Source: Saccharolobus islandicus REY15A | GTDB lineage: Archaea; Thermoproteota; Thermoprotei_A; Sulfolobales; Sulfolobaceae | NCBI RefSeq assembly: GCF_000189555.1 | Contig: NC_017276.1 | DNA: 64,000 nucleotides | Direction: 5' to 3' (one strand) | In this document: positions 4,515 to 18,945 of the stretch, in pieces | How the letters are laid out: every line of letters begins with the position of its first letter | Numbering within the stretch: the first letter of the stretch is position 1 | The notes under the pieces: generated by a model | Databases searched by the model: none | Told to the model about the DNA's origin: nothing | The model's input: only the letters and a program-made list of their open reading frames with translations | Position numbers and translations under genes: made by a program

Positions 4515-6074
4515 TTATATATTCTCTAACTTAGTCAAAATGTTTTTGTAGATATTATTTTCTTCTATGTTTAAGTTAGACAGGATCTTAATTAGCTGAG
4601 TTAATTCTAGACTCTTAGATGCTGGAAGGGTTTTTATTAAATCCGGATTCTTTTTGACTCTAGTTAATAAGCCTAACACATTATTACTACGCTCGGTGAA
4701 CTTAATTTTCTTCTTACCACTTATCATATAAAGCGTTCTGAAGAATAGCTTACTTCTTCCGTAAAACTTACCTATTATGTAATATTTAGCTATTTTATCA
4801 CTAATATTACAATTTATCGAATTACATAAAACGTTCACTACTTCTTTAAACACTTCTTTTGTTATATCGCCATTAACACCAATTATTCTTTCATATTTAG
4901 AGAACTCCTTCATTACTACTTCAAGAGCTTCAGTGATAGCCTCAATGTCCCTTAAATTTCCAATTCTCTTCTCTTTCAGAATACTGTGAAGCTCATTAAG
5001 CGTGATAGTCCCAGTTTTACCCTCATCTAAAGATATTCTAAACCCTTTCCCCTCATAACGTATCGCTAGCACTTTGTATTTTGACTTTAGCAGAGCTCTT
5101 ATATCTTCTTCTCTTATAATTTTCAATAGGAATGTTTTCTTATTGCTTGTTATATCTTCAAAGCTTAACCTCTCCATACTTTTCTCTATAAATGAATTAC
5201 ACGCATTATCTAAGCAATTGAAGAAATGTTCAGCGTAAAGGTAAGGGGTTAATAATCCGTTTACTAAATTGCTCAAAGTTCTCTTTAAGAAGCTTAAATA
5301 GAAGTTGTATATTTCAGTTTGTAAATCGTAGTCTAATGAAGCTACGTAAACCCCTTCTTTTGCGTTAAGTACTGCCATCGCCGATTTTACGAAATATTCA
5401 CTAGGCAAAATTGCCCACTTCCAACTTATTCTTGGTTGTACTTTATAGAACATACTTTTAATTCCTTTCTTATTTATAACAGTAAACATAGAATTATAGG
5501 AAATATAATCTAAAAGTGCTAAAGATAGTATAGGCCTAATACTTTTATCGGTTTCTCTAATTTTATAAATTAACTTATTTATTACGTAAAGTTGTAATGG
5601 AGAGAAAAATTTGTAGACGGTGTTAAAACCGTAAACACTTACTCTAAAATTTACAGTTTCCCTAGGTATATCCTCTTCTAGAATTAGCTCGAAACTTTCG
5701 TCTGTAGGGATAACTGAGGAATTAAGTAGTTCTTTTTTGCTTATCTCAAAGTTCAAGTATTGTTCTAGTAATGAATTCCACTCCTTGAAGTTAATTTTCT
5801 TTATTACTGTATTACAGTGGAGGCATCTAATTACCTTATTTTCGTTTACCTCAAAAACTGTATCGCAATTAGGGCATCTAATCTTCCATTTTCCCATTTT
5901 AATCTCATCTAACACCCTTACTTCTTTTGAAATATTTCTCACACACGCTATGACGTCTTTAGGATTATAATTAGAATTAAGTATTTCATGAATTATCTTA
6001 GGTGGAATTGAGGGTCCTCGCCAGTAAGGTAGTATAGCGTTTATTAATCTCACTTCTTTTGCTCTAGTTTGCAT
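4515..6074 (-). CDS. Catalytically inactive paralogue of the DUF1156 methyltransferase
   Basis: Collinear blocks shared with 13762..16563 (WKIRCPNC/WEVKCPHC, EWNSLLEQYLNFEIS/DWNEKYEKYLNGEIS, YKFFSPLQL/YKLFSARQL, FYLSFLKR/FYYVWLKR, FSKYERIIG/FTQYEKILG); no DPFAG or DPPY motif. Confidence 0.8.
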   Translation of the reverse strand: MQTRAKEVRLINAILPYWRGPSIPPKIIHEILNSNYNPKDVIACVRNISKEVRVLDEIKMGKWKIRCPNCDTVFEVNENKVIRCLHCNTVIKKINFKEWNSLLEQYLNFEISKKELLNSSVIPTDESFELILEEDIPRETVNFRVSVYGFNTVYKFFSPLQLYVINKLIYKIRETDKSIRPILSLALLDYISYNSMFTVINKKGIKSMFYKVQPRISWKWAILPSEYFVKSAMAVLNAKEGVYVASLDYDLQTEIYNFYLSFLKRTLSNLVNGLLTPYLYAEHFFNCLDNACNSFIEKSMERLSFEDITSNKKTFLLKIIREEDIRALLKSKYKVLAIRYEGKGFRISLDEGKTGTITLNELHSILKEKRIGNLRDIEAITEALEVVMKEFSKYERIIGVNGDITKEVFKEVVNVLCNSINCNISDKIAKYYIIGKFYGRSKLFFRTLYMISGKKKIKFTERSNNVLGLLTRVKKNPDLIKTLPASKSLELTQLIKILSNLNIEENNIYKNILTKLENI

Positions 6075-6134
6075 AGAATAAAAGAGAAGTATTAGACACT
6101 CTCGGTATGACGATACTATTTTAAGTGTTAAATA

Positions 6135-7406
6135 TTACTGGAGATTCTGTATACAATTATAACCTAATTTGTTTATATATGCGCACATGGTTAGAGGTGT
6201 TTCTGTATGTATTGGGATTACCTTCTTAGGTTTAATGTAATCTAATATAGTCCTTAACTCATAGGGATAATAATGACCTGAAATCCTCAGTCTATAGGTT
6301 ATAAAGCCTAGAGCCTTATACCAATTATCCTCCACATTTTCGTCCTCACCGCTTTCAGCCTTACTCTCTGTAGATAATGAGATGACTACAGAGCCCTTAG
6401 TTATTTCGCTTAATCTCCTTCCAAAGTCTATTAGATTCCCCTTAACTGTAAATATAACGTAATCCTGCGGGGATCTAATTATCTCTTCTTCATCTACTGT
6501 CTCAAATTCCATGTTTTTATCATCAAATTGATAAGCTTTATCTATCAAATTGAACTTTGTTATCCAGAAGCTAGCCATTTTTATTAATCTGCGTCCGGAA
6601 AACACCGGAATTCTGCCCTTCTCTTTAGTAACTAGAAGAAGGTACGCGAGCTCTTCTAAGTCTATGGGATCTATAGAGACCGTGATGAGTGAGTTACTGT
6701 GAATTTCGAAGATATTATTAACTTGCTCATTAAAATAATGGGGCTGAAAAGGGGAGACGGCAGACGAGAAGTTTGTTCCCTCTATTATTAAAACGTCAGT
6801 ATCTAATCCCCTCTCCTCATATTCCTCCAGAAGAGTTTTTTCATGAATTCTATTGTGTAGCTCTTGATCTGCTACTTTTAGAGGAGATGAAAGTCTTAAG
6901 TCGCCAGTATATAATATTTTAACGTCCCCGTTGTTATAATAAAATGAATAAGCCGGGTAAGCGCTATGTTCAACTTGCAATGGTAACACACCATCTTGGT
7001 TATCTCTTATATCAATTACGTTAACACCTAGAGGCGGAGATATATATGTAGTCCAGTTATCAGATTCTTTGTATGGTTCTATGAATTGATTAAACGTATC
7101 TTTATCTGGTACATATAACATCGTACCTACATTTAATAAATGGAGAACCCCGAGGTGGTCTAGGTGTAAGTGGGATATATAAATCTTGTTATATTCATCA
7201 GATGGTGGTATGATCCCTAGCCTCCTTAATTCTTTGGCACTTGATGGTTGAATGTTAGCGTTATAATATTTTTTAAATCTTGAAAATCTTATCCCTTGGT
7301 CAAAGACCAATGTATTGTCCTTATTCTCTATAATGATAAAATTACCCCCAATTTCATTAAATCCTTGTTTAATTCTGATTAGAGTATTCCCGTATTTATA
7401 TTCCAT
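6135..7406 (-). CDS. Metallo-beta-lactamase fold nuclease, beta-CASP / RNase J-like
   Basis: VFDQG, HLHLDH (HxHxDH), EHSA, TGDLR, IEGT, SGH and PIH motifs all present. Confidence 0.85.
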   Translation of the reverse strand: MEYKYGNTLIRIKQGFNEIGGNFIIIENKDNTLVFDQGIRFSRFKKYYNANIQPSSAKELRRLGIIPPSDEYNKIYISHLHLDHLGVLHLLNVGTMLYVPDKDTFNQFIEPYKESDNWTTYISPPLGVNVIDIRDNQDGVLPLQVEHSAYPAYSFYYNNGDVKILYTGDLRLSSPLKVADQELHNRIHEKTLLEEYEERGLDTDVLIIEGTNFSSAVSPFQPHYFNEQVNNIFEIHSNSLITVSIDPIDLEELAYLLLVTKEKGRIPVFSGRRLIKMASFWITKFNLIDKAYQFDDKNMEFETVDEEEIIRSPQDYVIFTVKGNLIDFGRRLSEITKGSVVISLSTESKAESGEDENVEDNWYKALGFITYRLRISGHYYPYELRTILDYIKPKKVIPIHTETPLTMCAYINKLGYNCIQNLQ

Positions 7407-10092
7407 GTTTAATACCCACTAGTGCTCCATTTACGTAAGTGTAAATCCATTCGCCACCTTGTGCTTTCAGTAAATCTAGCGGGCTTACAATTTTTATGTA
7501 TCTAACCTCACCTTTTCCCTCAGCTCTTACTTTATCTCCTAAACTTATCTTCCATCCTTGCTCGCTAAGGGCTTTTATCACAATATCTTTAACGTCTTCA
7601 TTATGTCCTTTAATCCCTATTATCGCCCCTACTATTATTGGGTTAACCCTAAAGTCCTCCATACTATTTGGTACCCAATTATCCTTTCCTCTACCTTGTC
7701 TGTAAGATATAAACTGCTGTTCAACATGGTAAAGTTTTTGTTTTACGTAGTTTATCACATTACACATCCATAATTTATCTTTTACTAATACCTCCTCTGG
7801 GTAAATTGCATTACAGTGTAACAATTGAGGGAGGATAGTCTTAATGAAATCACTTTGACGGATTATATCACCTTTAGAGTTTATTATTATAGGGAGGTGT
7901 AGTAAGTTCTTATTAGACTTAGTCTCTATATTTATATCTACAAGATAAATGTTGTAGTCTAAACTATCACAAACTATGTAATTCTTACGTAATTTAACTA
8001 ATTTAGAAACTAAAGAGTAAAGTAATTGTGTGTCCTTGCCTATCCTATTATCGTCGTATGTTTCGAATAAAGAAAATTTCAGTATGACTATTTTTCCGTT
8101 AGAAAAAGTTCCACCTTGATATTTGACATATTGTTCTAAGTATGATTTAATTGCATCATTAAGCTCTTTCCTATTTTCAAATCCTAAGATCTGTCTAATA
8201 GATTCAATCTCGTTTATGATCGAACCTTGCATCTTCTCGAATAACGCGAATTTTTTCATAGAGTCTTTTAGTATTTTTATCCTCTTTAACATAGCGTCTA
8301 TTAAATTATCTAAATTTCCTTGTAACGCAGCTTCCCATACTTTAATTGGGGTAACCTTTTCTTTTTCATTATTAGGCTCATTATATAGTGTGTATATTGG
8401 TATAGTCTCCTTGTCCTCACTAAGATCAAATATCTTGCTCACACTAACTCCTTGGTATATTAAAGCGTCAACTACTTTCTCACTAGACCCGGTACCCTTA
8501 GTTATTGATAAAAGCTTATTATAATAATTTTCGAGTAAGGCTTGTTCTAGAGGGATCTTCAATGAAATGTAATATATGTATACGGGCTTGGTTTGTTTAA
8601 GTCTCCACACTCTTCCGTTTCTCTGTTCAAATCTAACGATGCTTAACGGAATTTCATAATGTATTATAACGTTAGCGCTCTGTAAATTTAACCCCTCCGA
8701 CGCAACGTCTGTTGCAACTAAAACTTTACTTTCTTTACTTTCCAACCATTTCTTAATCTGGTCTATCCCCTCTTGATTTACCGTTTCACTAGTTACTTTC
8801 TTAATTTCCTTGTCTGATAAATTAAGCTCACGTTTGAGCTTATCTAAAATATAGTTCGCAGTATCCTTATATTCCGTAAATACTATTACCTTATCTCCCC
8901 TATTCAAATGAGCTTTCACTAAATTTGTAAGTGCCTTTATTCTGCTATCGTTATTAATAACCCTTTTAGCGAATTCTATTAACTGAGGTATGTAATCTTT
9001 AAACCTTTCAAGATATGGAGCATTTATTTCAGCCAATTCTTTTGCTATGTCATCGGGTTCTATACTTTCCTCTGTCTCCTCCTCCTCAGCATATTCCTCA
9101 GCTTCATCTATAACCTCATTTTCGTTTACTACCGTACTCCTATTCTCTATTATGTGTTTAAAAGTTAATAAACCAGCAGAGGGGCTGGACAATGAACGTC
9201 TACCTATCATAAACGCTAAGAGCTGAAGAGCTTTAGGCTTCTCGCCTACACTATTATAATAATCTTTAAGTATACTTAGAGAAAGTTCCCTTATGATAGT
9301 GTAATATTTTTCCTCATCTTCCGTAGGTTCTACTACATACTGAATGAAGTATGCTTTGGGGAATATCTCTTCTTTTTCGTAAACCTTATTAACGTTATCT
9401 TTGTTCCTCTTTAATACTATAGCCCTAACAGTATTCCTTAATATCGTATCGCTATTGTCCCTTAAATAGGGGTCTATAAGGACCAATCTCTTTATATAAT
9501 CATTGTCATTACCCCTATGGGGTGTGGCTGATAGGCCGATAAAGTGAGAGTTTGGGTTTCTAGTTACTAATGAGGCTATAATTGTGTACCTCTGGTTTTC
9601 CTTATTACCTATTACTCCTACTTTATGTATTTCGTCAACTACAATCAAGTCCCAGTTAATAGATAAGAACTTAGACTTATGCTCATTCCTCTTAATAGTA
9701 TCCACACTGACTACATAAATCCCGTTCTCATCCAGCATATCCTTGTAATTTCTGTAGTCAATTATTGGTAATTGCCACTCTTTAGCAAATTTCCTCAATT
9801 CAGATATCCACTGGCTAATCAAGACTTTAGGCACTATTAAAAGAACCTTTTTAACCCCCCTATTCTTAATTAATTGATCCATTATCATTATACCCTCTAT
9901 AGTCTTTCCTAACCCTACATCATCAGCTATAAGAAACCTTACTGGATCCCTTGAGAGAAGTCTATAAAATATTTCAGCCTGGTGGATGTAAGGTTCGTAA
10001 TCCCCTCCAGTTAAAATAGGATATCTAAATATGGGATGAGATTCCTTTAGTCTATCTAGGTAGTAGCTGATAAACTCACTCATAGAGGTCAC
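7396..10092 (-). CDS. SNF2-family helicase with a degenerate C-terminal DUF3883-like domain
   Basis: ADDVGLGKT, VVDEIH, SATP, VATDVASEGLNLQ, EQRNGRVWR; C-terminus EQGWKI...GDKVRAEGKGEVRYIKIV. Confidence 0.9.
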   Translation of the reverse strand: MTSMSEFISYYLDRLKESHPIFRYPILTGGDYEPYIHQAEIFYRLLSRDPVRFLIADDVGLGKTIEGIMIMDQLIKNRGVKKVLLIVPKVLISQWISELRKFAKEWQLPIIDYRNYKDMLDENGIYVVSVDTIKRNEHKSKFLSINWDLIVVDEIHKVGVIGNKENQRYTIIASLVTRNPNSHFIGLSATPHRGNDNDYIKRLVLIDPYLRDNSDTILRNTVRAIVLKRNKDNVNKVYEKEEIFPKAYFIQYVVEPTEDEEKYYTIIRELSLSILKDYYNSVGEKPKALQLLAFMIGRRSLSSPSAGLLTFKHIIENRSTVVNENEVIDEAEEYAEEEETEESIEPDDIAKELAEINAPYLERFKDYIPQLIEFAKRVINNDSRIKALTNLVKAHLNRGDKVIVFTEYKDTANYILDKLKRELNLSDKEIKKVTSETVNQEGIDQIKKWLESKESKVLVATDVASEGLNLQSANVIIHYEIPLSIVRFEQRNGRVWRLKQTKPVYIYYISLKIPLEQALLENYYNKLLSITKGTGSSEKVVDALIYQGVSVSKIFDLSEDKETIPIYTLYNEPNNEKEKVTPIKVWEAALQGNLDNLIDAMLKRIKILKDSMKKFALFEKMQGSIINEIESIRQILGFENRKELNDAIKSYLEQYVKYQGGTFSNGKIVILKFSLFETYDDNRIGKDTQLLYSLVSKLVKLRKNYIVCDSLDYNIYLVDINIETKSNKNLLHLPIIINSKGDIIRQSDFIKTILPQLLHCNAIYPEEVLVKDKLWMCNVINYVKQKLYHVEQQFISYRQGRGKDNWVPNSMEDFRVNPIIVGAIIGIKGHNEDVKDIVIKALSEQGWKISLGDKVRAEGKGEVRYIKIVSPLDLLKAQGGEWIYTYVNGALVGIKHGI

Positions 10093-10471
10093 GAAAAGAT
10101 CTACTGACTCTGTAAGTATCTACTATATTATTTTTCCTTGAATATCTACTTAAAAATTCAGTATACCAAAACTGTAAGCTAAACTCGTCCATTCCTATTA
10201 TTGTCTTCCCTAGCTCATTAATCCTCTTTGCATAAACTTTCCTAATGGCTTGTCTCACACCACCATAAACTATCATAATTTTAAACAGTCTTTCGTTCTC
10301 AGTCCTTATAGTTTTTTTAGTCCTCTTATATTCCAAATTAACGTTCTTGAGAATAATATCATAAATTTCACTTAAGCTCACATTAGCCTTAAACACTCGT
10401 GAGCTATTACTGTCTCTTACGATGTAATAATAAATCCTATTAGAGACAGTTTCTCTTATGAGATACTCCAC
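10076..10471 (-). CDS. Small protein of the DUF499 operon (positional and possibly structural counterpart of DUF3780)
   Basis: Coupled between the DUF499 and helicase genes; C-terminal MDEFSLQFWY...RSFRDLY. Confidence 0.55.
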   Translation of the reverse strand: MEYLIRETVSNRIYYYIVRDSNSSRVFKANVSLSEIYDIILKNVNLEYKRTKKTIRTENERLFKIMIVYGGVRQAIRKVYAKRINELGKTIIGMDEFSLQFWYTEFLSRYSRKNNIVDTYRVSRSFRDLYE

Positions 10472-10472
10472 C

Positions 10473-13400
10473 TTAACACACCTTAACTCTTACTTTTATA
10501 ATCCCCTTATTAATCAACTCGTTAATTTCCTCGACTTTATTTATACCCTTAATTTCCTCGACTTTTATCCTAAGCGAGCCAGAAATTTTAGGCTTTAAAC
10601 CTAACAAGCTTAATATGGGATTTATGAAATTAATGAAATCGAGAATATTAGACCCTGAAGGTCTAACACTTACTGAGATCTTCTTATTAGGGTCTTCTAC
10701 GTTGATTTCACCTGCCAAGCCTTTTTTACCGATTACTGATGAGTTTAACTTCATAATCACAGTCTTTATATCACTCATATCTATTATATCGATTTCGGAA
10801 ATCCTTGAATCTCTATTAACTTGATCTACAACCTTCTCACACTCACTCTGCCTTAACCTAGTGACTATCTCAACCCTCTTCTCCTTATTATCATATCTTG
10901 CACTTACAATAGTTATACCGTCTTGATTTAACGTAATCTTCAGAGTAGTCTGGAAATCTGGGATTCCTTCTTTTACGTCTAATTCTCCATAGCTACTATT
11001 TAAGTATACCTTAGAGTTGAAATTACCTACTTTCTTCACCATTATTTTAACTTCCTTTATTTCACCCGGTAATCCTTCTATCTCTTTAGGTTCAGCATAT
11101 AACTCTATACCGGTCTCTAGAGTTTCCTCAACGAGTTTAATCTCTCCTGCATTAAATTTAACAAACCAATTTTCATCTTCTTTAAGTTCTCTTAAAGGTA
11201 CTCTTGTACCATCGGGTAATTCTAATACATAATACCTCTTGATTACTTTATCATCTTCCTCTATGGTTTTCTCTTGCGAGACTAATTCGTTAATCTCTTT
11301 ATCTGCAGCTTCATTAGCCGGTAAGATTATTGAAGATTCATCAACTACTATTTCTCCCATACTTTCATATTTCTTATAATAAACTTTCCCCTTAGTCATA
11401 ACGCCTATTTCTAACTTCTCCACACCGTTGCGTATAGCGTTATAAATTGCAGAATCAGTAACAAAAGGTAAAGAAGGATTAGTGTAAAATATCTCCCTTA
11501 AGTCCTTAACAGAAAATGACTTCTTAGTTATATCAATTCCTAAGTTACTTAATAACGTTACTAATACATCGAAATCGAAATTTTCTTCACGATATATTTT
11601 ACCCTCATCAATTAACGTGCTTTCGACTTGCTGGAGCAACGTCTTTTCTCCACTTTTTAATTCTACTATTCTAACCTCGTTATTCCCAATGGGGTAGGCT
11701 ACTTTATCAAAATATTGAAATATTTGATTATATATGGCATTCTCTAAGCTATTTAAATATTCACGTAATATTTTCCCCGCATATTCTCTTGAGATTTTAT
11801 CATTATAATAAGGTGTTACATCGATATTGGAGCAGGAAATATGCTTCCTCATATAATCTTCTATTTTATCCCTATTAGACCCTGTGGATGAAAATAGTAA
11901 CGTTATAGTATTAGAATATCTTCTCAAGCCTTCTGTCTTCCCAGAAGGTACATAATATAATATTCTCCTCGCAACTTCTTCAGAAGCTTTAAATATCTCG
12001 TTGACATCCTTACAATCTTGGCACAGCGGCTTACTTAATATTACAACGTAATACGACGGTTCATCGACGTTAACTAATTCATTTTTATTTCTGAGTATAG
12101 TTCTGTATAATTTTAGTAAAAGCCCGCTGATAGTTTTTTTACCCTTCTTTTGCACATTGTCTATCGGAGTTTCGGCTAATTCGAGCATAATATTATCTAA
12201 CCTATCCTCTACCTCAGCTTGCGGTACCTTACTAGCGTCTTTTTCACATATGGTTTTAGGGTCTAAGAAATAAGTAACCCAATATCTTCCCTTATCATTC
12301 ATAATATATGGAATAATCATGTCAACGTTCTTCGAATTACTACTAATGCTCCCTAAAATCTCCTTTACATCGGATGGGAGCCTACCTATTAAGTTGAGGT
12401 ATTCTGGATCAAGCACTGAAGTAATTATTTCCTTATCATCAGGTAATGCAGAAGCGAGTTGACCCGCGTCTAACCCTAACTGGTGATAGTATGTTGTGAT
12501 AAATATGTAATTAGCTAATAAGAATACTATTTCCAATCCCTTAGACCTCTGAATAATTGTATCTGCAACTGTACCGTAATTCTTGAAATCCTTCAGTAGT
12601 AAATCGTGTATCTGAGGATTTTTTATACTTAAGTCCGATGGTAAAATTAAACTCCTTGTAGGTTTAGAGTTCCATAAGTCCCTTATTACATACCTAGTTA
12701 TCTTTATACCTTCACGAGTACCTTGAAGGTGAGTGTTCCCTTCTAATAACTTCTTTAATGTCTCAATATAAAGTGGATGAAAAGGATAAGTCCTCACAAC
12801 ATCTTGGGCTATAGCAACGTTAACGTAGTCTTTATACTGATCAGTTAACTTCTGATATTTACCTACTACATTACTCTTAACAGTCTCATTTACTTCCTTG
12901 AATATTCTCTTTATTAATACATTAGCTAAATCTGTAGAGGTCTCTATAGGTGCCCTAAATGCTTTACCGCTCCTTTCTAACCTTTTAGCTAATGCCTTTA
13001 TAACCTCAGGCTCATACTCCGACTCAATATACTCTATAATATCTTGTTTATTAGAAGAAGTAGTAATTTTAGCTGGAATTGTAGCTACTAACACTACTGG
13101 CAAATTAACGCCCATTGATGCTAAAGCTTCGAGAAATAGTAAACATTGCTCATAATACTCTTTATATCTGTACTTTAATCTTAAAAGGTAATAAGCTATC
13201 TCATCTAACAAGATAAGAACTTTTTCCCCTTTAAACAAATTCTCAAGATCATCTTTCTGCGGAGCTATCATATCCTCGTCTAATTTCCTAACTATTTCAT
13301 ATTTTCCAAGTTTTTTGGCAATATAACCCCATAAGGTCTTTATTTCAACGTTATCCTCCTTTAAAGGATTTACCGGTGATGGTGCAGTTCTACTATCCTT

Positions 13401-13769
13401 ACCCCCTATACCTATTACTTTAACACCTTCTAAAACGTTAAGCCCGTATTCCTTCACTAGTTTTGGATTATTGAAAGTGTGATACAGTAAGAGTAAAGTA
13501 TGTGTTTTACCGCCTCCGAATAAGGAATATATCGTTATAGTAATCCCTTTACCTTGGCTCAAGGCATTTGTTATCTCGTTGACTAAAATCCTCATGGAGT
13601 CAGTTATATACGTAACAGAGAAGAATTCTTTAGGGTCTAAATAAATTTGTGGTGCATTCCCAACTATAACATCACTGAGTTCAGGAGCCATTTGATCATC
13701 CAGGCTTGGATTAAATACGTCATCTCTAACCTTGTTCTCATAAATTAAGTTAGAAATTGGGTTAGCCAT
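10473..13769 (-). CDS. DUF499-family AAA+ ATPase
   Basis: FGGGKTHTL Walker A, ILLDEI Walker B, YPFHP and TREGIKI motifs; typical neighbour of DUF1156 genes. Confidence 0.85.
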   Translation of the reverse strand: MANPISNLIYENKVRDDVFNPSLDDQMAPELSDVIVGNAPQIYLDPKEFFSVTYITDSMRILVNEITNALSQGKGITITIYSLFGGGKTHTLLLLYHTFNNPKLVKEYGLNVLEGVKVIGIGGKDSRTAPSPVNPLKEDNVEIKTLWGYIAKKLGKYEIVRKLDEDMIAPQKDDLENLFKGEKVLILLDEIAYYLLRLKYRYKEYYEQCLLFLEALASMGVNLPVVLVATIPAKITTSSNKQDIIEYIESEYEPEVIKALAKRLERSGKAFRAPIETSTDLANVLIKRIFKEVNETVKSNVVGKYQKLTDQYKDYVNVAIAQDVVRTYPFHPLYIETLKKLLEGNTHLQGTREGIKITRYVIRDLWNSKPTRSLILPSDLSIKNPQIHDLLLKDFKNYGTVADTIIQRSKGLEIVFLLANYIFITTYYHQLGLDAGQLASALPDDKEIITSVLDPEYLNLIGRLPSDVKEILGSISSNSKNVDMIIPYIMNDKGRYWVTYFLDPKTICEKDASKVPQAEVEDRLDNIMLELAETPIDNVQKKGKKTISGLLLKLYRTILRNKNELVNVDEPSYYVVILSKPLCQDCKDVNEIFKASEEVARRILYYVPSGKTEGLRRYSNTITLLFSSTGSNRDKIEDYMRKHISCSNIDVTPYYNDKISREYAGKILREYLNSLENAIYNQIFQYFDKVAYPIGNNEVRIVELKSGEKTLLQQVESTLIDEGKIYREENFDFDVLVTLLSNLGIDITKKSFSVKDLREIFYTNPSLPFVTDSAIYNAIRNGVEKLEIGVMTKGKVYYKKYESMGEIVVDESSIILPANEAADKEINELVSQEKTIEEDDKVIKRYYVLELPDGTRVPLRELKEDENWFVKFNAGEIKLVEETLETGIELYAEPKEIEGLPGEIKEVKIMVKKVGNFNSKVYLNSSYGELDVKEGIPDFQTTLKITLNQDGITIVSARYDNKEKRVEIVTRLRQSECEKVVDQVNRDSRISEIDIIDMSDIKTVIMKLNSSVIGKKGLAGEINVEDPNKKISVSVRPSGSNILDFINFINPILSLLGLKPKISGSLRIKVEEIKGINKVEEINELINKGIIKVRVKVC

Positions 13770-16563
13770 TTAACCACCTCTCTATGCCTAATTTATCTCC
13801 AGACAAACGTTTAGAGGGTTCCTTCTCTATATCTTTATCTGGTAACACCCTCGCAAAAATCTTTGCCATAGCTAAAGCCTCGTCTACGAAACGAGTCCTT
13901 TCTCTGAGCTTCTCAATTTCGTCCTTAAGCTTATCGGAATGCTTCAAGGAGACATATTCAAGGTAGTGGAACACTTGAACGGGATTAGAGAAGTTGTAAT
14001 TCCCTTGAAGGGCCATTTTTACATCTGGAAGCTGTTCTAATGCACTAATTGCGTCATCGCCTTGATTAGGTTCTACTAATGCTATTGCGCCTTTTGCGTC
14101 CGTAACTCTAATAATTCCTTTGTACTGTAGATCTTGAATATCTAAACTTCCAGATGAGATATTTAGAAACACCATGCTATTATTATCTAACATCCTCACT
14201 CCCTTATTAGGCGGTGGAATTAGAAGCTTTACTAAAACATAGTAAACTGCGTAAGGATCTGAAATCCTCACTCCCATTCCCTTAGATAACCCTTCGATTA
14301 ATGCTTGTGCAGTTGTTGGAAACACATAGTTCTTGATTAAGTCTTCAACTGCATTTAACCCTTCCCCTCTTAAGCCTAAAATTTTTTCATACTGGGTAAA
14401 CACACTAAGGACTTTCCCTAAAACCTCTATGTAAGTATCAATGGAGAGTTTAAGTTTCTGATTGCTTAGCATGTTTGATACCCATTCCGACACTTTAGAA
14501 ATAGCTTCTTTTCTAACCTCTTGAATTAACTTAGTACCTTCTGCCCTCTTTCTCCATACTATGACTATAGATTTATCTAAGGAAATAACAGTAGACATTG
14601 CTGTTAATCTTGTCTCATCTTCTGTCGTTATTGCATGGGTGGCAGTTATTCTGAACTTTGAAACATACCAGCCCGCATAGATTAGAGATATCCACGCGTC
14701 TGGTGATGTATGGTTATAGAAAGTCACCAGTATTCCGTTTTCTTTTAAAAAGTCAGCGAGCTTTTCGAATGCTTGTGCGAGCTTATCTCGGAAATATTCA
14801 TAAGTACCGACATTATCTCCAAATACCTTTTCTCTTCCTTCACTGACTCCTATATCTTTAGGCACTAGTTCCTCCCATTGGGTACTATAAGGAAATGGGA
14901 TTATTCTTTTTAACCATACATAATAGAAATCACTTAATTCTGGATAAGCAACATCATCTGCATATGGCGGATCAGTAATGATAACGTCTACTTTTTCGTT
15001 TAAAGTCAATTCATTGACATCACTATTCATTATCTCGATCTTAGAGCCACTGTTAGTCTGTATTAAATATTCTAGTCCTTCTATTACATGATCTAAACTC
15101 CTAGATAAGGAACCTATTATATCAGCCAAAGGAGATATTTCTACCCTGTTCCATGCAAATGCGATACCTCTAAAGGCTAGAGCGGAAGCAACAAATTTTC
15201 TGGTAGACTCAACTGACGTTAAGAAGCAATTATGTCTTATATGATTTAGAAGGGCTATAGTTAGATATGTTATTATTGCCTCTTTATATTCCTCATCTCC
15301 TTTTATCTTTTCCCTAAGCTCGTTCAGTTTAGTAATAATTTTAGAGAATATTATCAACTGCCTTGCACTAAATAATTTATAGAACTTGTCCCCGCCCCAC
15401 GTAAAAGTTGTAATATCTCTTGTTATATTAGGCACTCTTTCTGTAGGTATATTTGTAATATCGATATCCCTTAATTTTTCAAAACTATTCCAGAACTTCT
15501 CCGTGTCTTCTTTATTAATTTCTTCAAACTCCAGATCCTTTCCTCCTCCCTTGAATTTAACTAAGAGTGCTGGTCTCGCTTTGGCGTTTTGCAGTTCTTC
15601 TATACTAATTTCTCCATTTAGGTATTTCTCGTATTTCTCGTTCCAATCCCTTATCGCCTCCTTAACATACCACTTGTCTCCCTTACCGGGCAAAACGCTA
15701 TTGCAGAATAAGCATTTAGCATAACTATTTCTCGCTCTAACATTCCCCTCTGGGACGCGGTATTCCTTGCCGTCAACTATTAATTTGTCCTTAGTCTTTT
15801 TCGCAGATATACTCTTCCTATTAAGTTCTTTATTTAGGTCAATAACCTTTATTCTTAATTGCTTACCATTAACTTCTGGATTCATGAAAACCAGTCTTTT
15901 AAAACTACCAGATTTGACTTCCCCTTCACTCTCTTCCTCCTCTTCCTCATCACTACTTCCTTTTAATTCTAATAGCCACCACTTGTAGACTAAAGGAGTA
16001 TAATTTCCGCAGTGTGGACACTTTACCTCCCATGTACCTACAAAACCAGTATAATCGCCATATAATTCTTTAACATCATCTTCCAGACTTTTTATTAGCT
16101 CTTCACCGTATTTCTTAACGTCTTCAATTAACTTTACTCCATATTTAGGATACTCAAGAACAGCCTTTAAAAACGCATATGCTGTAGGCAATAACTCAGA
16201 GGCAATAACTTTACCAACTTTTAACCTTTTCGCCTCGAGCGGAATTGAACCAAACCCAGCAAAAGGGTCTAAAAGTGTAAAGTTTTTAAATTCGTCATTT
16301 ACTATGGGTTGAGATTTATGTGGGAGATGTTCTGATAGTCTAATGATCATCTTGAACTTATCAAGTGGGTAATTTTCTGGGAGTAATGCTGCAGCAGTAA
16401 ATGCCCTTGCTGAAATTAAAGGTTTTCTAGTCCACCAGAATATCATTTCCCAATAGACCGGTCTACCTGGGCCCTTTTCCTTTTCAGCTTTTTTATCTAT
16501 TTCCGGTACTATATCTCCAAAAGCATCACTTTCGATTAACCGCCTTTCTATATTTTGAGACAT
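13762..16563 (-). CDS. DUF1156 adenine-specific DNA methyltransferase with Zn ribbon
   Basis: FWWTRKPLISAR N-terminus, motif I DPFAGFGSIP, motif IV TDPPY, CPHC and CLFC knuckles. Confidence 0.9.
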   Translation of the reverse strand: MSQNIERRLIESDAFGDIVPEIDKKAEKEKGPGRPVYWEMIFWWTRKPLISARAFTAAALLPENYPLDKFKMIIRLSEHLPHKSQPIVNDEFKNFTLLDPFAGFGSIPLEAKRLKVGKVIASELLPTAYAFLKAVLEYPKYGVKLIEDVKKYGEELIKSLEDDVKELYGDYTGFVGTWEVKCPHCGNYTPLVYKWWLLELKGSSDEEEEEESEGEVKSGSFKRLVFMNPEVNGKQLRIKVIDLNKELNRKSISAKKTKDKLIVDGKEYRVPEGNVRARNSYAKCLFCNSVLPGKGDKWYVKEAIRDWNEKYEKYLNGEISIEELQNAKARPALLVKFKGGGKDLEFEEINKEDTEKFWNSFEKLRDIDITNIPTERVPNITRDITTFTWGGDKFYKLFSARQLIIFSKIITKLNELREKIKGDEEYKEAIITYLTIALLNHIRHNCFLTSVESTRKFVASALAFRGIAFAWNRVEISPLADIIGSLSRSLDHVIEGLEYLIQTNSGSKIEIMNSDVNELTLNEKVDVIITDPPYADDVAYPELSDFYYVWLKRIIPFPYSTQWEELVPKDIGVSEGREKVFGDNVGTYEYFRDKLAQAFEKLADFLKENGILVTFYNHTSPDAWISLIYAGWYVSKFRITATHAITTEDETRLTAMSTVISLDKSIVIVWRKRAEGTKLIQEVRKEAISKVSEWVSNMLSNQKLKLSIDTYIEVLGKVLSVFTQYEKILGLRGEGLNAVEDLIKNYVFPTTAQALIEGLSKGMGVRISDPYAVYYVLVKLLIPPPNKGVRMLDNNSMVFLNISSGSLDIQDLQYKGIIRVTDAKGAIALVEPNQGDDAISALEQLPDVKMALQGNYNFSNPVQVFHYLEYVSLKHSDKLKDEIEKLRERTRFVDEALAMAKIFARVLPDKDIEKEPSKRLSGDKLGIERWLNG

Positions 16564-18000: not shown

Positions 18001-18945
18001 TTAGCTTAATATCTTTCTTAACGCTAACTTGCAAAGACTCATAAGGGTGTTATATCCTATTTTTTCATACTTAGAAAACCTATATCGCAAATCGTTTTTA
18101 ATCTCATTTTTAATAAAATCAATAATACTTCTCTTGACTATACTACCCTCTAAAATAGCCGTTAGCATCTCTTTTCTTTTAGTATTAGCAATATCGAATC
18201 CTAAGCTTATCTTATCCACCTTACCCATTGCAACATAATCGCTTATGTTATCAAGGAAATTATCTAAAGCTTCATCTGGAATTAAGATAGGAGATAATGC
18301 TAAGTAATATTCTTCTTCAATACTTGTATCCACTTTATAATCATCAACTTCAAGCTTAGCTATTCTATTTTCTCCTCCAAAATTCACTATTTTACCGTTT
18401 ATTTTATCACTTATCGCATCATTATCTATGAATATCACGTAATTAACCTCCTTCTTAAATGCTAAATATCTAGCTGAGTAAAGGTAATGTTCTTTAACAG
18501 TTCTGGTACTTTTATCTATACTTATTCCTATCCTATCTTGATGATTTATGATCTGGAATAGTTTATTTTTATCATAAAAAAGTTCATAAATCCCCTTCTC
18601 CCGTCGTTCGTACTCTTTTTCTAGCAAAGTGGGTAGATTTATAAGGTGTTGTTGGTCTACTAAAGCTAAATGATTGCCCATTCTGAGAGGAAATAAATAC
18701 TCTCCATTAGTCTCTATGAAAGTTCCATAAATAGTAGCTAGTAAATTCGTTAAGTCCGATAACCAGTCCCCAGTCCCAGAACTCTTGTTAAATAATATAT
18801 AACCTAACATTCCGGCAATTGTAGAAGGCCTTGGTATTATTAAAGACTGTGCTGCAGTATGGGAACCGGTAATTAAGGGCTCAAATTCCCCCTGGCTTCT
18901 AAACATTAACGGTTCTAACGGTTTTATTAACACTCTCTTCATCAC
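18001..18945 (-). CDS. cmr3: Type III-B CRISPR subunit Cmr3
   Basis: IKPLEPLMFR, PRPSTIAG, RIGISID...KEHYLYS, FGGENR; directly after cas10. Confidence 0.92.
   Translation of the reverse strand: MMKRVLIKPLEPLMFRSQGEFEPLITGSHTAAQSLIIPRPSTIAGMLGYILFNKSSGTGDWLSDLTNLLATIYGTFIETNGEYLFPLRMGNHLALVDQQHLINLPTLLEKEYERREKGIYELFYDKNKLFQIINHQDRIGISIDKSTRTVKEHYLYSARYLAFKKEVNYVIFIDNDAISDKINGKIVNFGGENRIAKLEVDDYKVDTSIEEEYYLALSPILIPDEALDNFLDNISDYVAMGKVDKISLGFDIANTKRKEMLTAILEGSIVKRSIIDFIKNEIKNDLRYRFSKYEKIGYNTLMSLCKLALRKILS

Follow-up and report, generated by a model that had tools for sequence, protein, structure and literature searches.

The cassette and its last gene

We analyzed a 64,000-nucleotide stretch of DNA from Saccharolobus islandicus REY15A (contig NC_017276.1), referred to here as the window, in which six closely spaced genes occupy positions 4515-16563 of the minus strand. 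They encode, in order, a DUF1156 N6-adenine DNA methyltransferase (MTase), a DUF499 AAA+ ATPase, a small basic protein, an SNF2-type helicase, a metallo-beta-lactamase/beta-CASP nuclease (MBL), and a protein of 519 amino acids (aa). The last gene (4515..6074, minus strand) encodes a true homolog of the MTase that begins the cassette, from which the cofactor-binding and catalytic motifs have been lost; we term this protein the dead paralog, and it together with its relatives the dead family.

The other five genes, all on the same strand, place the cassette among known defense systems. The MTase (933 aa; 13762..16563) appears active, with DPFAGFG and DPPY motifs intact and matches to DUF1156 and MethyltransfD12 in Pfam and to MTase_II and HmaB in PADLOC. 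It is followed by the DUF499 ATPase (1098 aa; 10473..13769; Pfam DUF499, E = 1e-125; PADLOC HmaC) and the small basic protein (131 aa; 10076..10471; isoelectric point, pI, 9.8), which had no family match in Pfam or PADLOC. The helicase (898 aa; 7396..10092) matched SNF2-rel_dom, ResIII, and Helicase_C in Pfam and the DrmD, BrxHII, and HmaA models in PADLOC, and Pfam and NCBIfam scans detected no nuclease domain in it. The MBL protein (423 aa; 6135..7406), which matched Lactamase_B and RMMBL in Pfam as well as the RNase J family, and in which HLHLDH is invariant, is likely the restriction effector of the cassette. Since PADLOC models called the first, second, and fourth genes HmaB, HmaC, and HmaA-like, respectively, the cassette is a DUF499-centered, BREX-related (Hma-type) defense system, and the operon holds at one locus the DUF499 ATPase, DUF1156 MTase, and SNF2-type helicase by which such systems are defined. 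The 131-aa protein between the ATPase and the helicase was kept in all related cassettes, including distant ones with only five genes (see below).

Homology of the 519-aa protein to the methyltransferase

The first-pass annotation of the window had described the open reading frame (ORF) at 4515..6074 as a catalytically dead, compacted paralog of the operon's own MTase. The descent from a DUF1156 MTase and the loss of catalysis were borne out by homology, motif loss, and conserved-column counts. BLASTP aligned residues 79-200 of the dead paralog with residues 279-451 of the 933-aa MTase (E = 8e-12) and, in a second collinear segment, residues 377-437 with 708-780 (E = 2e-4); the first zinc (Zn) knuckle aligned too. 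A profile-profile comparison of nine dead-family members against 11 MTases returned a probability of 99.95% (E = 1.8e-37) over 353 collinear columns that reached residue 442 of the dead paralog, with no significant similarity to the MTase profile over residues 1-55. Every six-frame ORF of the window that reached 50 aa was searched with a hidden Markov model (HMM) of each family, and each model matched only its own family's ORF and the other one (4e-19 and 1.6e-18). The 519-aa frame is intact, and all seven collinear blocks noted at first pass (both Zn knuckles, EWN..EQYLN.EIS, YK.FS..QL, L.LALL, FY...LKR, F..YE.I.G, and ISD..A.YY) were present in pairwise and multiple alignments. Scanned against Pfam, NCBIfam, and PADLOC, the 519-aa protein gave only a weak zinc-ribbon match, and sequence searches of the PDB, with the dead-family profile and with the MTase, yielded nothing useful.

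Elements lost and retained

We mapped the losses by taking positions at least 90% conserved among MTases and scoring them for the same residue in the dead paralog. The DUF1156 N-domain retained four of 25 such columns (17 gapped) and the S-adenosylmethionine (SAM)-binding half two of 31 (27 gapped); none of the 17 columns of strand 3 and motif IV was kept (8 gapped). Retention was 22/54 in the target-recognition insert (20 gapped), 8/30 in the rest of the core (8 gapped), and 3/14 in the C-terminal helical region (5 gapped). The DUF1156 N-terminal helical domain had no Pfam match in the dead paralog, where only a 'YW-RG-P' trace lies opposite 'WWTRKP'. We do not claim this trace, or a motif I remnant in this protein, as a vestige of the enzyme, because its N-terminal 93 residues aligned with the MTase profile only at the first Zn knuckle.

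The SAM-binding motif is deleted, as had been stated at first pass: DPFAGFG, helix A, and strand 2 are absent in the alignments, and none of the four subfamilies of the dead family retains the helix, the strand, or the glycine loop. In other members (P0007, P0008, and L021, from three of the four subfamilies) 'DPF' is followed directly by 'SE' of the next strand. The catalytic DPPY, which had likewise been called deleted, has instead been substituted in place. The strand-4 columns remain and carry YVAS (residues 243-246; 5337..5348, minus strand), as seen in a profile alignment that is gap-free here, in multiple alignments, and in the motif table; distant relatives within the dead family have HPFT, HPYT, YPLT, or YPFT at this position. 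Because the cofactor half (motif I, helix A, and strands 2 and 3) is lost, DPPY has become YVAS, and the adenine-pocket residues are gone, the dead paralog is, to judge by its sequence, unable to bind SAM or to methylate. It follows from the pocket loss (0/17) that, if the protein reads DNA, methylation would not be readable via the old active site, which fits the 'modification-blind' sensor suggested at first pass.

Several elements of the enzyme are retained. A four-cysteine zinc ribbon (C67, C70, C84, and C87; residues 59-95; 5790..5900, minus strand), with cysteines invariant in the family and a TIGR02098 (MJ0042-type zinc finger) score of 21.8 bits against a cutoff of 20.9, equates to the two Zn knuckles of the MTase recognition insert, such that C67/C70 pair with C182/C185 and C84/C87 with C284/C287. 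The beta-rich domain of ~95 residues that separates the knuckles in the enzyme is deleted (a span of 79 columns), and further large deletions removed a beta hairpin and helix later in the insert as well as strand 3. The helical scaffold of the insert follows (residues 96-236; 5367..5789, minus strand), bearing WN..LE.YLN.EIS, YGF..VYKFFSP.QL, and LSLALLDYISYNS; its helices coincide in the AlphaFold models of both proteins, and it is the portion best conserved with the active enzymes.

Beyond motif IV come a helix (FYLSFLKR) and the segment TLSNLVNGLLTPYLYAEHFFNCLDNACNSF (residues 249-297 together; 5184..5330, minus strand), delimited in a table of 40 sequences and predicted to form two beta hairpins. 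A remnant of the substrate-side Rossmann half (residues 305-358; 5001..5162, minus strand) runs from strand 5 through helix E to strands 6 and 7, an order shared by both models although the sequence alignment is weak here. The protein ends in a basic helical region (residues 359-519; 4518..5000, minus strand; net charge +10), whose initial part (FSKYERIIG, ISDKIAKYY) corresponds to the first helical domain that follows the MTase core; residues 443-519 are predicted to be helical and align weakly to the C-terminal triad of helix-turn-helix-like domains of the enzyme.

Two extra cysteine pairs, each with four-residue spacing, were also noted. C287 and C292 (5214-5216 and 5199-5201) are invariant in the whole dead family, and C417 and C422 (4824-4826 and 4809-4811) only in the close clade. 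From their spacing and conservation, the four might constitute a second metal site.

The dead family is basic throughout, with a pI of 8.8-9.4 in all full-length members (9.35 and a net charge of +22 for the window protein). MTases beside a dead gene, in five lineages and partly from incomplete sequences, had a pI of 5.6-6.0 in four and 7.2 in one. The idea that cognate MTases had handed positive charge to their dead partners was dropped, as two cognate-clade enzymes with dead partners are basic.

Predicted structures

An AlphaFold2 model of the dead paralog, built from a 21-sequence alignment, had a predicted local distance difference test score (pLDDT) of 88.9 and a predicted template modeling score (pTM) of 0.85; the MTase model was usable (pLDDT 82.7). 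The two models shared the same secondary-structure state at 66.5% of 478 aligned residues, compared with 33-51% when the alignment was shifted. After motif IV, both run through a helix, strand 5, a helix, strand 6, strand 7, a short strand, and a helix, with strands at 314-317, 333-341, and 344-351 and a helix at 322-330 in the dead paralog, and strands at 606-616, 637-646, and 664-672 and a helix at 621-634 in the MTase. This matching order indicates that what remains is the substrate-side half of a Rossmann sheet without its cofactor side.

The first-pass annotation had proposed structure prediction as a check on homology. The secondary-structure order shared with the MTase model came out as expected; structural homology to any solved methyltransferase could not be demonstrated by Foldseek, in which the dead-paralog model, searched against the PDB and viral structures, retrieved zinc-ribbon fragments only, with no methyltransferase among 108 PDB matches. 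For the MTase model, the best PDB matches were the N6-adenine methyltransferases CamA, M.TaqI, and M.BseCI, with weak E-values (3.7e-3 and above) and probabilities of 0.98-1.0.

Phylogeny and a reciprocal segment loss

In a maximum-likelihood reconstruction of 29 sequences, the dead family formed one supported clade (100/100) on a long branch, the MTases that adjoin a dead gene formed a second (100/97), and the remaining MTases a third group. The tree is unrooted and has three groups, and so does not distinguish a placement of the dead clade as sister to the cognate clade from an older one. Branching within the dead clade broadly mirrored that of the cognate MTase clade, and this, with the clade structure, indicates that the duplication is older than the spread of the cassette type and that the two genes have largely traveled together since.

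A 40-sequence table exposed a reciprocal loss in the active enzymes. In every MTase without a dead neighbor, the FYYVWLKR helix is followed by ALSDxxxGxLxPRFxxEAFF, which in a subset continues as xCxDxxCxxFxE; ~28 residues are missing at this point in 12 of the 12 MTases beside a dead gene. The dead family retains the segment, in the cysteine-bearing form with C287 and C292 invariant. Because the cognate MTases lost a segment that the dead family keeps, the dead-family profile scored non-cognate DUF1156 enzymes (6e-13 and 2e-12) better than the cognate clade (6e-9 and 7e-8). The description of the ORF as a copy of the operon's own enzyme therefore does not stand in any recent sense, given its separate clade, the retained segment, and the closer profile match to non-cognate enzymes; on these sequence relationships, the dead gene is an ancient paralog.

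Selection and conservation

The ratio of nonsynonymous to synonymous divergence (dN/dS; Nei-Gojobori, seven pairs with unsaturated dS) was 0.12-0.25 for the dead gene, on a par with its neighbors over the same pairs: 0.15-0.29 for DUF499, 0.10-0.33 for SNF2, 0.07-0.24 for MBL, and 0.12-0.31 for the MTase. The gene was intact in ~12 lineages (449-523 aa), with no frameshift or stop at identities down to 32%, and 172 residues were invariant across the close clade. In the deepest comparisons, the dead paralog changes faster than any other cassette protein, with an identity of 32-33% against 38-63% for the others.

One lineage, sampled in two metagenomes, has lost the gene. A single, recent, shared deletion cut it after codon 63 (L013 11330-11545; L014 9627-9851), leaving a first 190 bases that are 99% identical to an intact relative. 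The other five genes show no damage in L013; L014 additionally has its DUF499 gene broken into two ORFs. Overall, the proposal that selection rather than decay preserved the frame was upheld by the dN/dS check suggested with it, in which neither a ratio near 1 nor frequent frameshifts were found, and the dead paralog is a folded protein under purifying selection.

Distribution and genomic linkage

HMMER, run exhaustively over 1.84 billion representatives, returned only four clusters of the dead family, followed by DUF1156 MTases of ~700-1050 aa. The closest database protein came from S. islandicus. A word-indexed protein search, repeated with a wider alignment, added two fragments, and scans of a species-representative genome collection found zero loci. 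The dead family is unannotated and confined to Sulfolobales, and was not found in the literature searched.

The six-gene order recurs in Sulfurisphaera ohwakuensis (L005) and in hot-spring metagenome contigs (L001-L004, L007, L012, L015, and L018-L020), and the genes flanking the cassette vary between loci. Apart from the recent deletion above, the dead gene was present in each Sulfolobales-clade cassette with enough flanking sequence. Among the ~12 lineages with the gene, it is co-oriented with the cassette in seven and convergent in five (L008, L009, L021/L022, L092, and L093), where it lies on the opposite strand and still adjoins MBL. In either orientation, it is always at the MBL-nuclease end; that the two genes remained neighbors through an inversion speaks for a functional link and for a promoter of the dead gene's own. 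Comparison of the window with two related cassettes shows nucleotide identity falling just upstream of the MTase start and ~40 bases past the stop of the dead gene, which places the latter inside the shared block.

Starting from the MBL protein, a scan of metagenomes exposed widespread five-gene cassettes (MTase, DUF499, small protein, SNF2, and MBL) in which MBL is 31-43% identical (L010, L025, L026, L028-L031, and L034). Those with enough flanking sequence (L010, L025, and L028/L031) had no dead gene, and the gene is therefore an addition specific to the Sulfolobales clade. Two candidates for hidden family members were rejected: a convergent gene of 502 aa in L011 proved unrelated, and a 448-aa gene in L010 is an MBL homolog.

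The spacer between the MBL and dead genes (60 bases; 6075..6134, minus strand) holds a conserved TATCGTCATAC (6105-6115) and TAATAC (6089-6094). These elements, as TATCGTyATAC and TAATAy, are invariant in seven co-oriented loci whose proteins are 53-89% identical, from which we infer that they are the dead gene's own promoter. A separate promoter would be needed in the convergent lineages, since the gene is on the opposite strand there.

In one of the convergent lineages, a complete genome (L008 19126-21512; CP045706.1), the MTase reads as two overlapping ORFs (~299 and 607 aa) that lie in different frames, and the dead gene and other four genes are intact. A frameshift, an error in sequencing, or genuine loss of the active enzyme might each account for the split.

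Function

Of the functions suggested at first pass, some indirect support exists for a heterodimer partner and for a restriction-side sensor or scaffold, and none for a decoy. Our tentatively preferred reading makes the dead paralog a noncatalytic pseudo-enzyme subunit that would bind DNA and partner the active MTase, to which it would supply in trans the segment that the enzyme has lost together with an extra DNA-binding surface. Each copy lost something that the other keeps and the two strictly co-occur, which suggests that the proteins act together. When a homomeric enzyme gives rise to paralogs, these frequently remain associated as a heteromer in which one partner is dead, as in METTL3-METTL14, Trm61-Trm6, and DNMT3A-DNMT3L, and in EcoP15I one Mod subunit reads the site and the other methylates. 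The pair considered here would descend from an ancestral homomeric MTase, and the dead subunit may take part in site recognition or may dock the MTase to the DUF499, SNF2, and MBL machinery. Its gene would probably be transcribed from its own promoter.

Several observations weigh against such a pairing. It presupposes a putative homomeric state of DUF1156 MTases, and the dead gene sits at the end of the cassette far from the MTase, beside MBL. Pairwise distances of the dead paralog track those of MBL (r = 0.96) and DUF499 (0.95) better than those of the MTase (0.80), although the pairs are not independent, the MTase shows signs of recombination, and the signals are weak. The MTase gene has about twice the synonymous divergence of the cassette, and the dead gene does not, so that the two were not always inherited together. 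Sequence reading may fall to the beta-rich parts of the recognition insert, and these are deleted. Finally, the gene may be dispensable, given that one lineage lost it beside five intact neighbors.

Some of the same observations would fit a restriction-side role, which we consider less likely than not but nearly as likely as the pairing, and the strongest of the alternatives. Here, the dead paralog would replace the MTase in a restriction-only complex with DUF499, SNF2, and MBL, holding DNA without methylating it, in which case restriction complexes would never protect incoming DNA by mistake. The unvarying position beside the MBL gene, whichever way the dead gene faces, the best distance correlations being with MBL and DUF499, and the weak signal that excess synonymous divergence is confined to the MTase all point this way. 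So do the basic charge and the recognition scaffold being the best-kept part, and a promoter-like element of its own would permit separate dosage. Moreover, as the helicase had no nuclease-domain match, nuclease and DNA targeting may lie in separate proteins. The absence of the beta-rich recognition domains counts against this role as well, and with no adenine-pocket residue, methylated and unmethylated sites would be indistinguishable by the dead paralog alone. Furthermore, five-gene cassettes with MBL exist outside Sulfolobales without a dead gene, and the reciprocal segment loss in the active enzyme is left unexplained.

Pairing and restriction-side adaptation are not mutually exclusive. 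In a further scenario, which we hold to be unlikelier than the restriction-side role by itself, a homomeric MTase was duplicated, chemistry stayed with the active copy and the cysteine-bearing segment and recognition scaffold with the dead one, and the latter now forms a dedicated subunit that engages DNA but is unable to methylate, separating a restriction complex (with DUF499, SNF2, and MBL) from a modification complex. If this were true, the dead subunit would be an inherent safeguard against accidental protection of invading DNA by the defense system.

It is improbable that the dead copy is a decoy or guard that mimics the MTase surface, soaking up viral MTase inhibitors or triggering the nuclease arm. 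Inactive enzyme domains have been proposed as invader sensors in BREX-related systems (PMC12839542), the protein is the fastest-evolving of its cassette at depth, and a Sulfolobus virus interacts with this MTase family at least through its own copy (see below). Nevertheless, a surface so heavily remodeled, on a protein of half the length and opposite net charge, would be poor mimicry, and whole-gene dN/dS gave no sign of positive selection. Moreover, we know of no viral inhibitor of the DUF1156 MTase family.

A regulator that binds DNA and represses or delays the restriction genes, in the manner of the controller proteins of classical restriction-modification, would account for the zinc ribbon, the basic helical tail, the separate promoter-like element, and the free orientation. 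We give this very little credence, as 519 aa with 22 conserved scaffold residues exceed what a regulator needs and, with no search made for operator repeats, nothing links the protein to promoter DNA. Least of all do we credit a functionless, slowly decaying remnant, which the large deletions relative to the enzyme and the loss in one lineage might evoke, because it is contradicted by the selection data (dN/dS of 0.12-0.25, ~12 lineages without frameshift or stop down to 32% identity, and 172 invariant residues in the close clade), and the predicted fold is confident and compact.

Relation to known systems

DUF499-centered systems were named Hma (PMC8565338) and recently redescribed as BREX-related, with the methyltransferase termed 'BR-MTase' (PMC12839542). 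The only experimental work on Hma, in Halomonas, found that the helicase-nuclease alone gave defense, with no effect of methylation seen (PMC11232893). The S. islandicus cassette fits none of the three published BR subtypes (PMC12839542). The PD-(D/E)XK nuclease fused to the helicase, a feature of Hma and BR Type-1, was not found in the 898-aa helicase, which is followed instead by a separate MBL/beta-CASP gene. For BR Type-2, whose helicase carries an HKD nuclease and whose DUF3780 gene stands alone, there was no PLD/HKD or DUF3780 Pfam match in the cassette proteins, and neither the standalone PglZ nor the inactive STAND protein of BR Type-3 was among the six genes in Pfam and PADLOC searches. 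Similarly, no HsdS-type specificity subunit (Methylase_S) was matched in Pfam, NCBIfam, or PADLOC, and the dead paralog had no match to one in PDB sequence or fold searches.

The nearest relatives of the dead paralog are the DUF1156 MTases themselves (HmaB/BR-MTase). It lies in one operon with such an enzyme, and its homology to them covers the zinc-finger insert, the helix that follows motif IV, the latter half of the core sheet, and the first of the C-terminal helical domains. Unlike them, it lacks the DUF1156 N-domain, motif I, and the glycine loop, its motif IV is replaced, and the beta-rich insert domains are deleted; it is also half as long, opposite in net charge, and with most C-terminal domains beyond the first missing or unrecognizable. 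Since three features that define DUF1156 MTases failed in the dead paralog, it should not be filed as such an enzyme.

Among MTases with dead partners, complexes have been demonstrated for METTL14/METTL3, Trm6/Trm61, DNMT3L/DNMT3A, and MTA9/MTA1, the partners of which keep a whole Rossmann fold. The dead paralog resembles these in being a paralog that lost cofactor binding and catalysis, is under selection, and is always found with an active copy. However, it has lost half of the Rossmann fold, and its complex is proposed from sequence; to our knowledge, none of METTL14, Trm6, DNMT3L, or MTA9 belongs to a prokaryotic defense system. In the Type III Mod dimer of the EcoP15I kind, one MTase subunit reads DNA and the other methylates within a helicase and nuclease complex, which is comparable to the arrangement that we favor. 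The Type III subunits, though, are identical products of one gene and, apart from the general methyltransferase fold, are unrelated to the dead paralog in sequence.

Inactive modules in BREX and BREX-related systems include STAND domains such as BrxB and the restriction-endonuclease domain of BrxHII-type helicases (PMC12839542). Like the dead paralog, these are catalytically dead, conserved, fast-evolving enzyme derivatives in the same defense class, but they derive from ATPases and nucleases, and the dead paralog from an MTase. A term search of that survey (PMC12839542, 2026) found no methyltransferase-derived module and no MBL nuclease, and literature searches turned up nothing relevant on an inactive MTase paralog in defense systems or on this Sulfolobales operon. 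The MTase-derived pseudo-enzyme and the six-gene variant with an MBL nuclease, neither found in the 2026 survey, are thus additions to the defense inventory. They bear on how BREX and BREX-related (Hma, DUF499) systems recognize DNA and couple methylation to restriction, in that a natural variant parts the MTase recognition scaffold from the chemistry, as a separate gene under selection. Genetic toolboxes are available for several Sulfolobales species (PMC13324097), and the role of the noncatalytic parts of an MTase is therefore open to direct single-gene deletion.

Other observations on the locus and the MTase family

The MTase gene itself differs from the rest of the cassette in its divergence from related cassettes, with a dS of 0.78-1.31 (0.40-0.56 for the other five genes) and a nucleotide identity of 76-85% (86-93% for the other five). 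To go by these values, the pattern suggests that the MTase end of the cassette was exchanged by recombination.

A member of the MTase family is also encoded by the Sulfolobus virus STSV1. Its ORF12 (L094 3236-5338; NC_006268.1 12958-15060) is a 700-aa DUF1156-family MTase with DPFAGFC and DPPY intact, which matched the MTase profile at E = 4e-195 and ends right after the catalytic core, without the C-terminal helical domains. It looks like a viral self-protection enzyme against this class of host system.

Lastly, genes of a Type III-B CRISPR effector (Cmr3 and Cas10/Cmr2) are located just upstream of the cassette, at 18001-22055, and this adjacency marks the region as a defense island.

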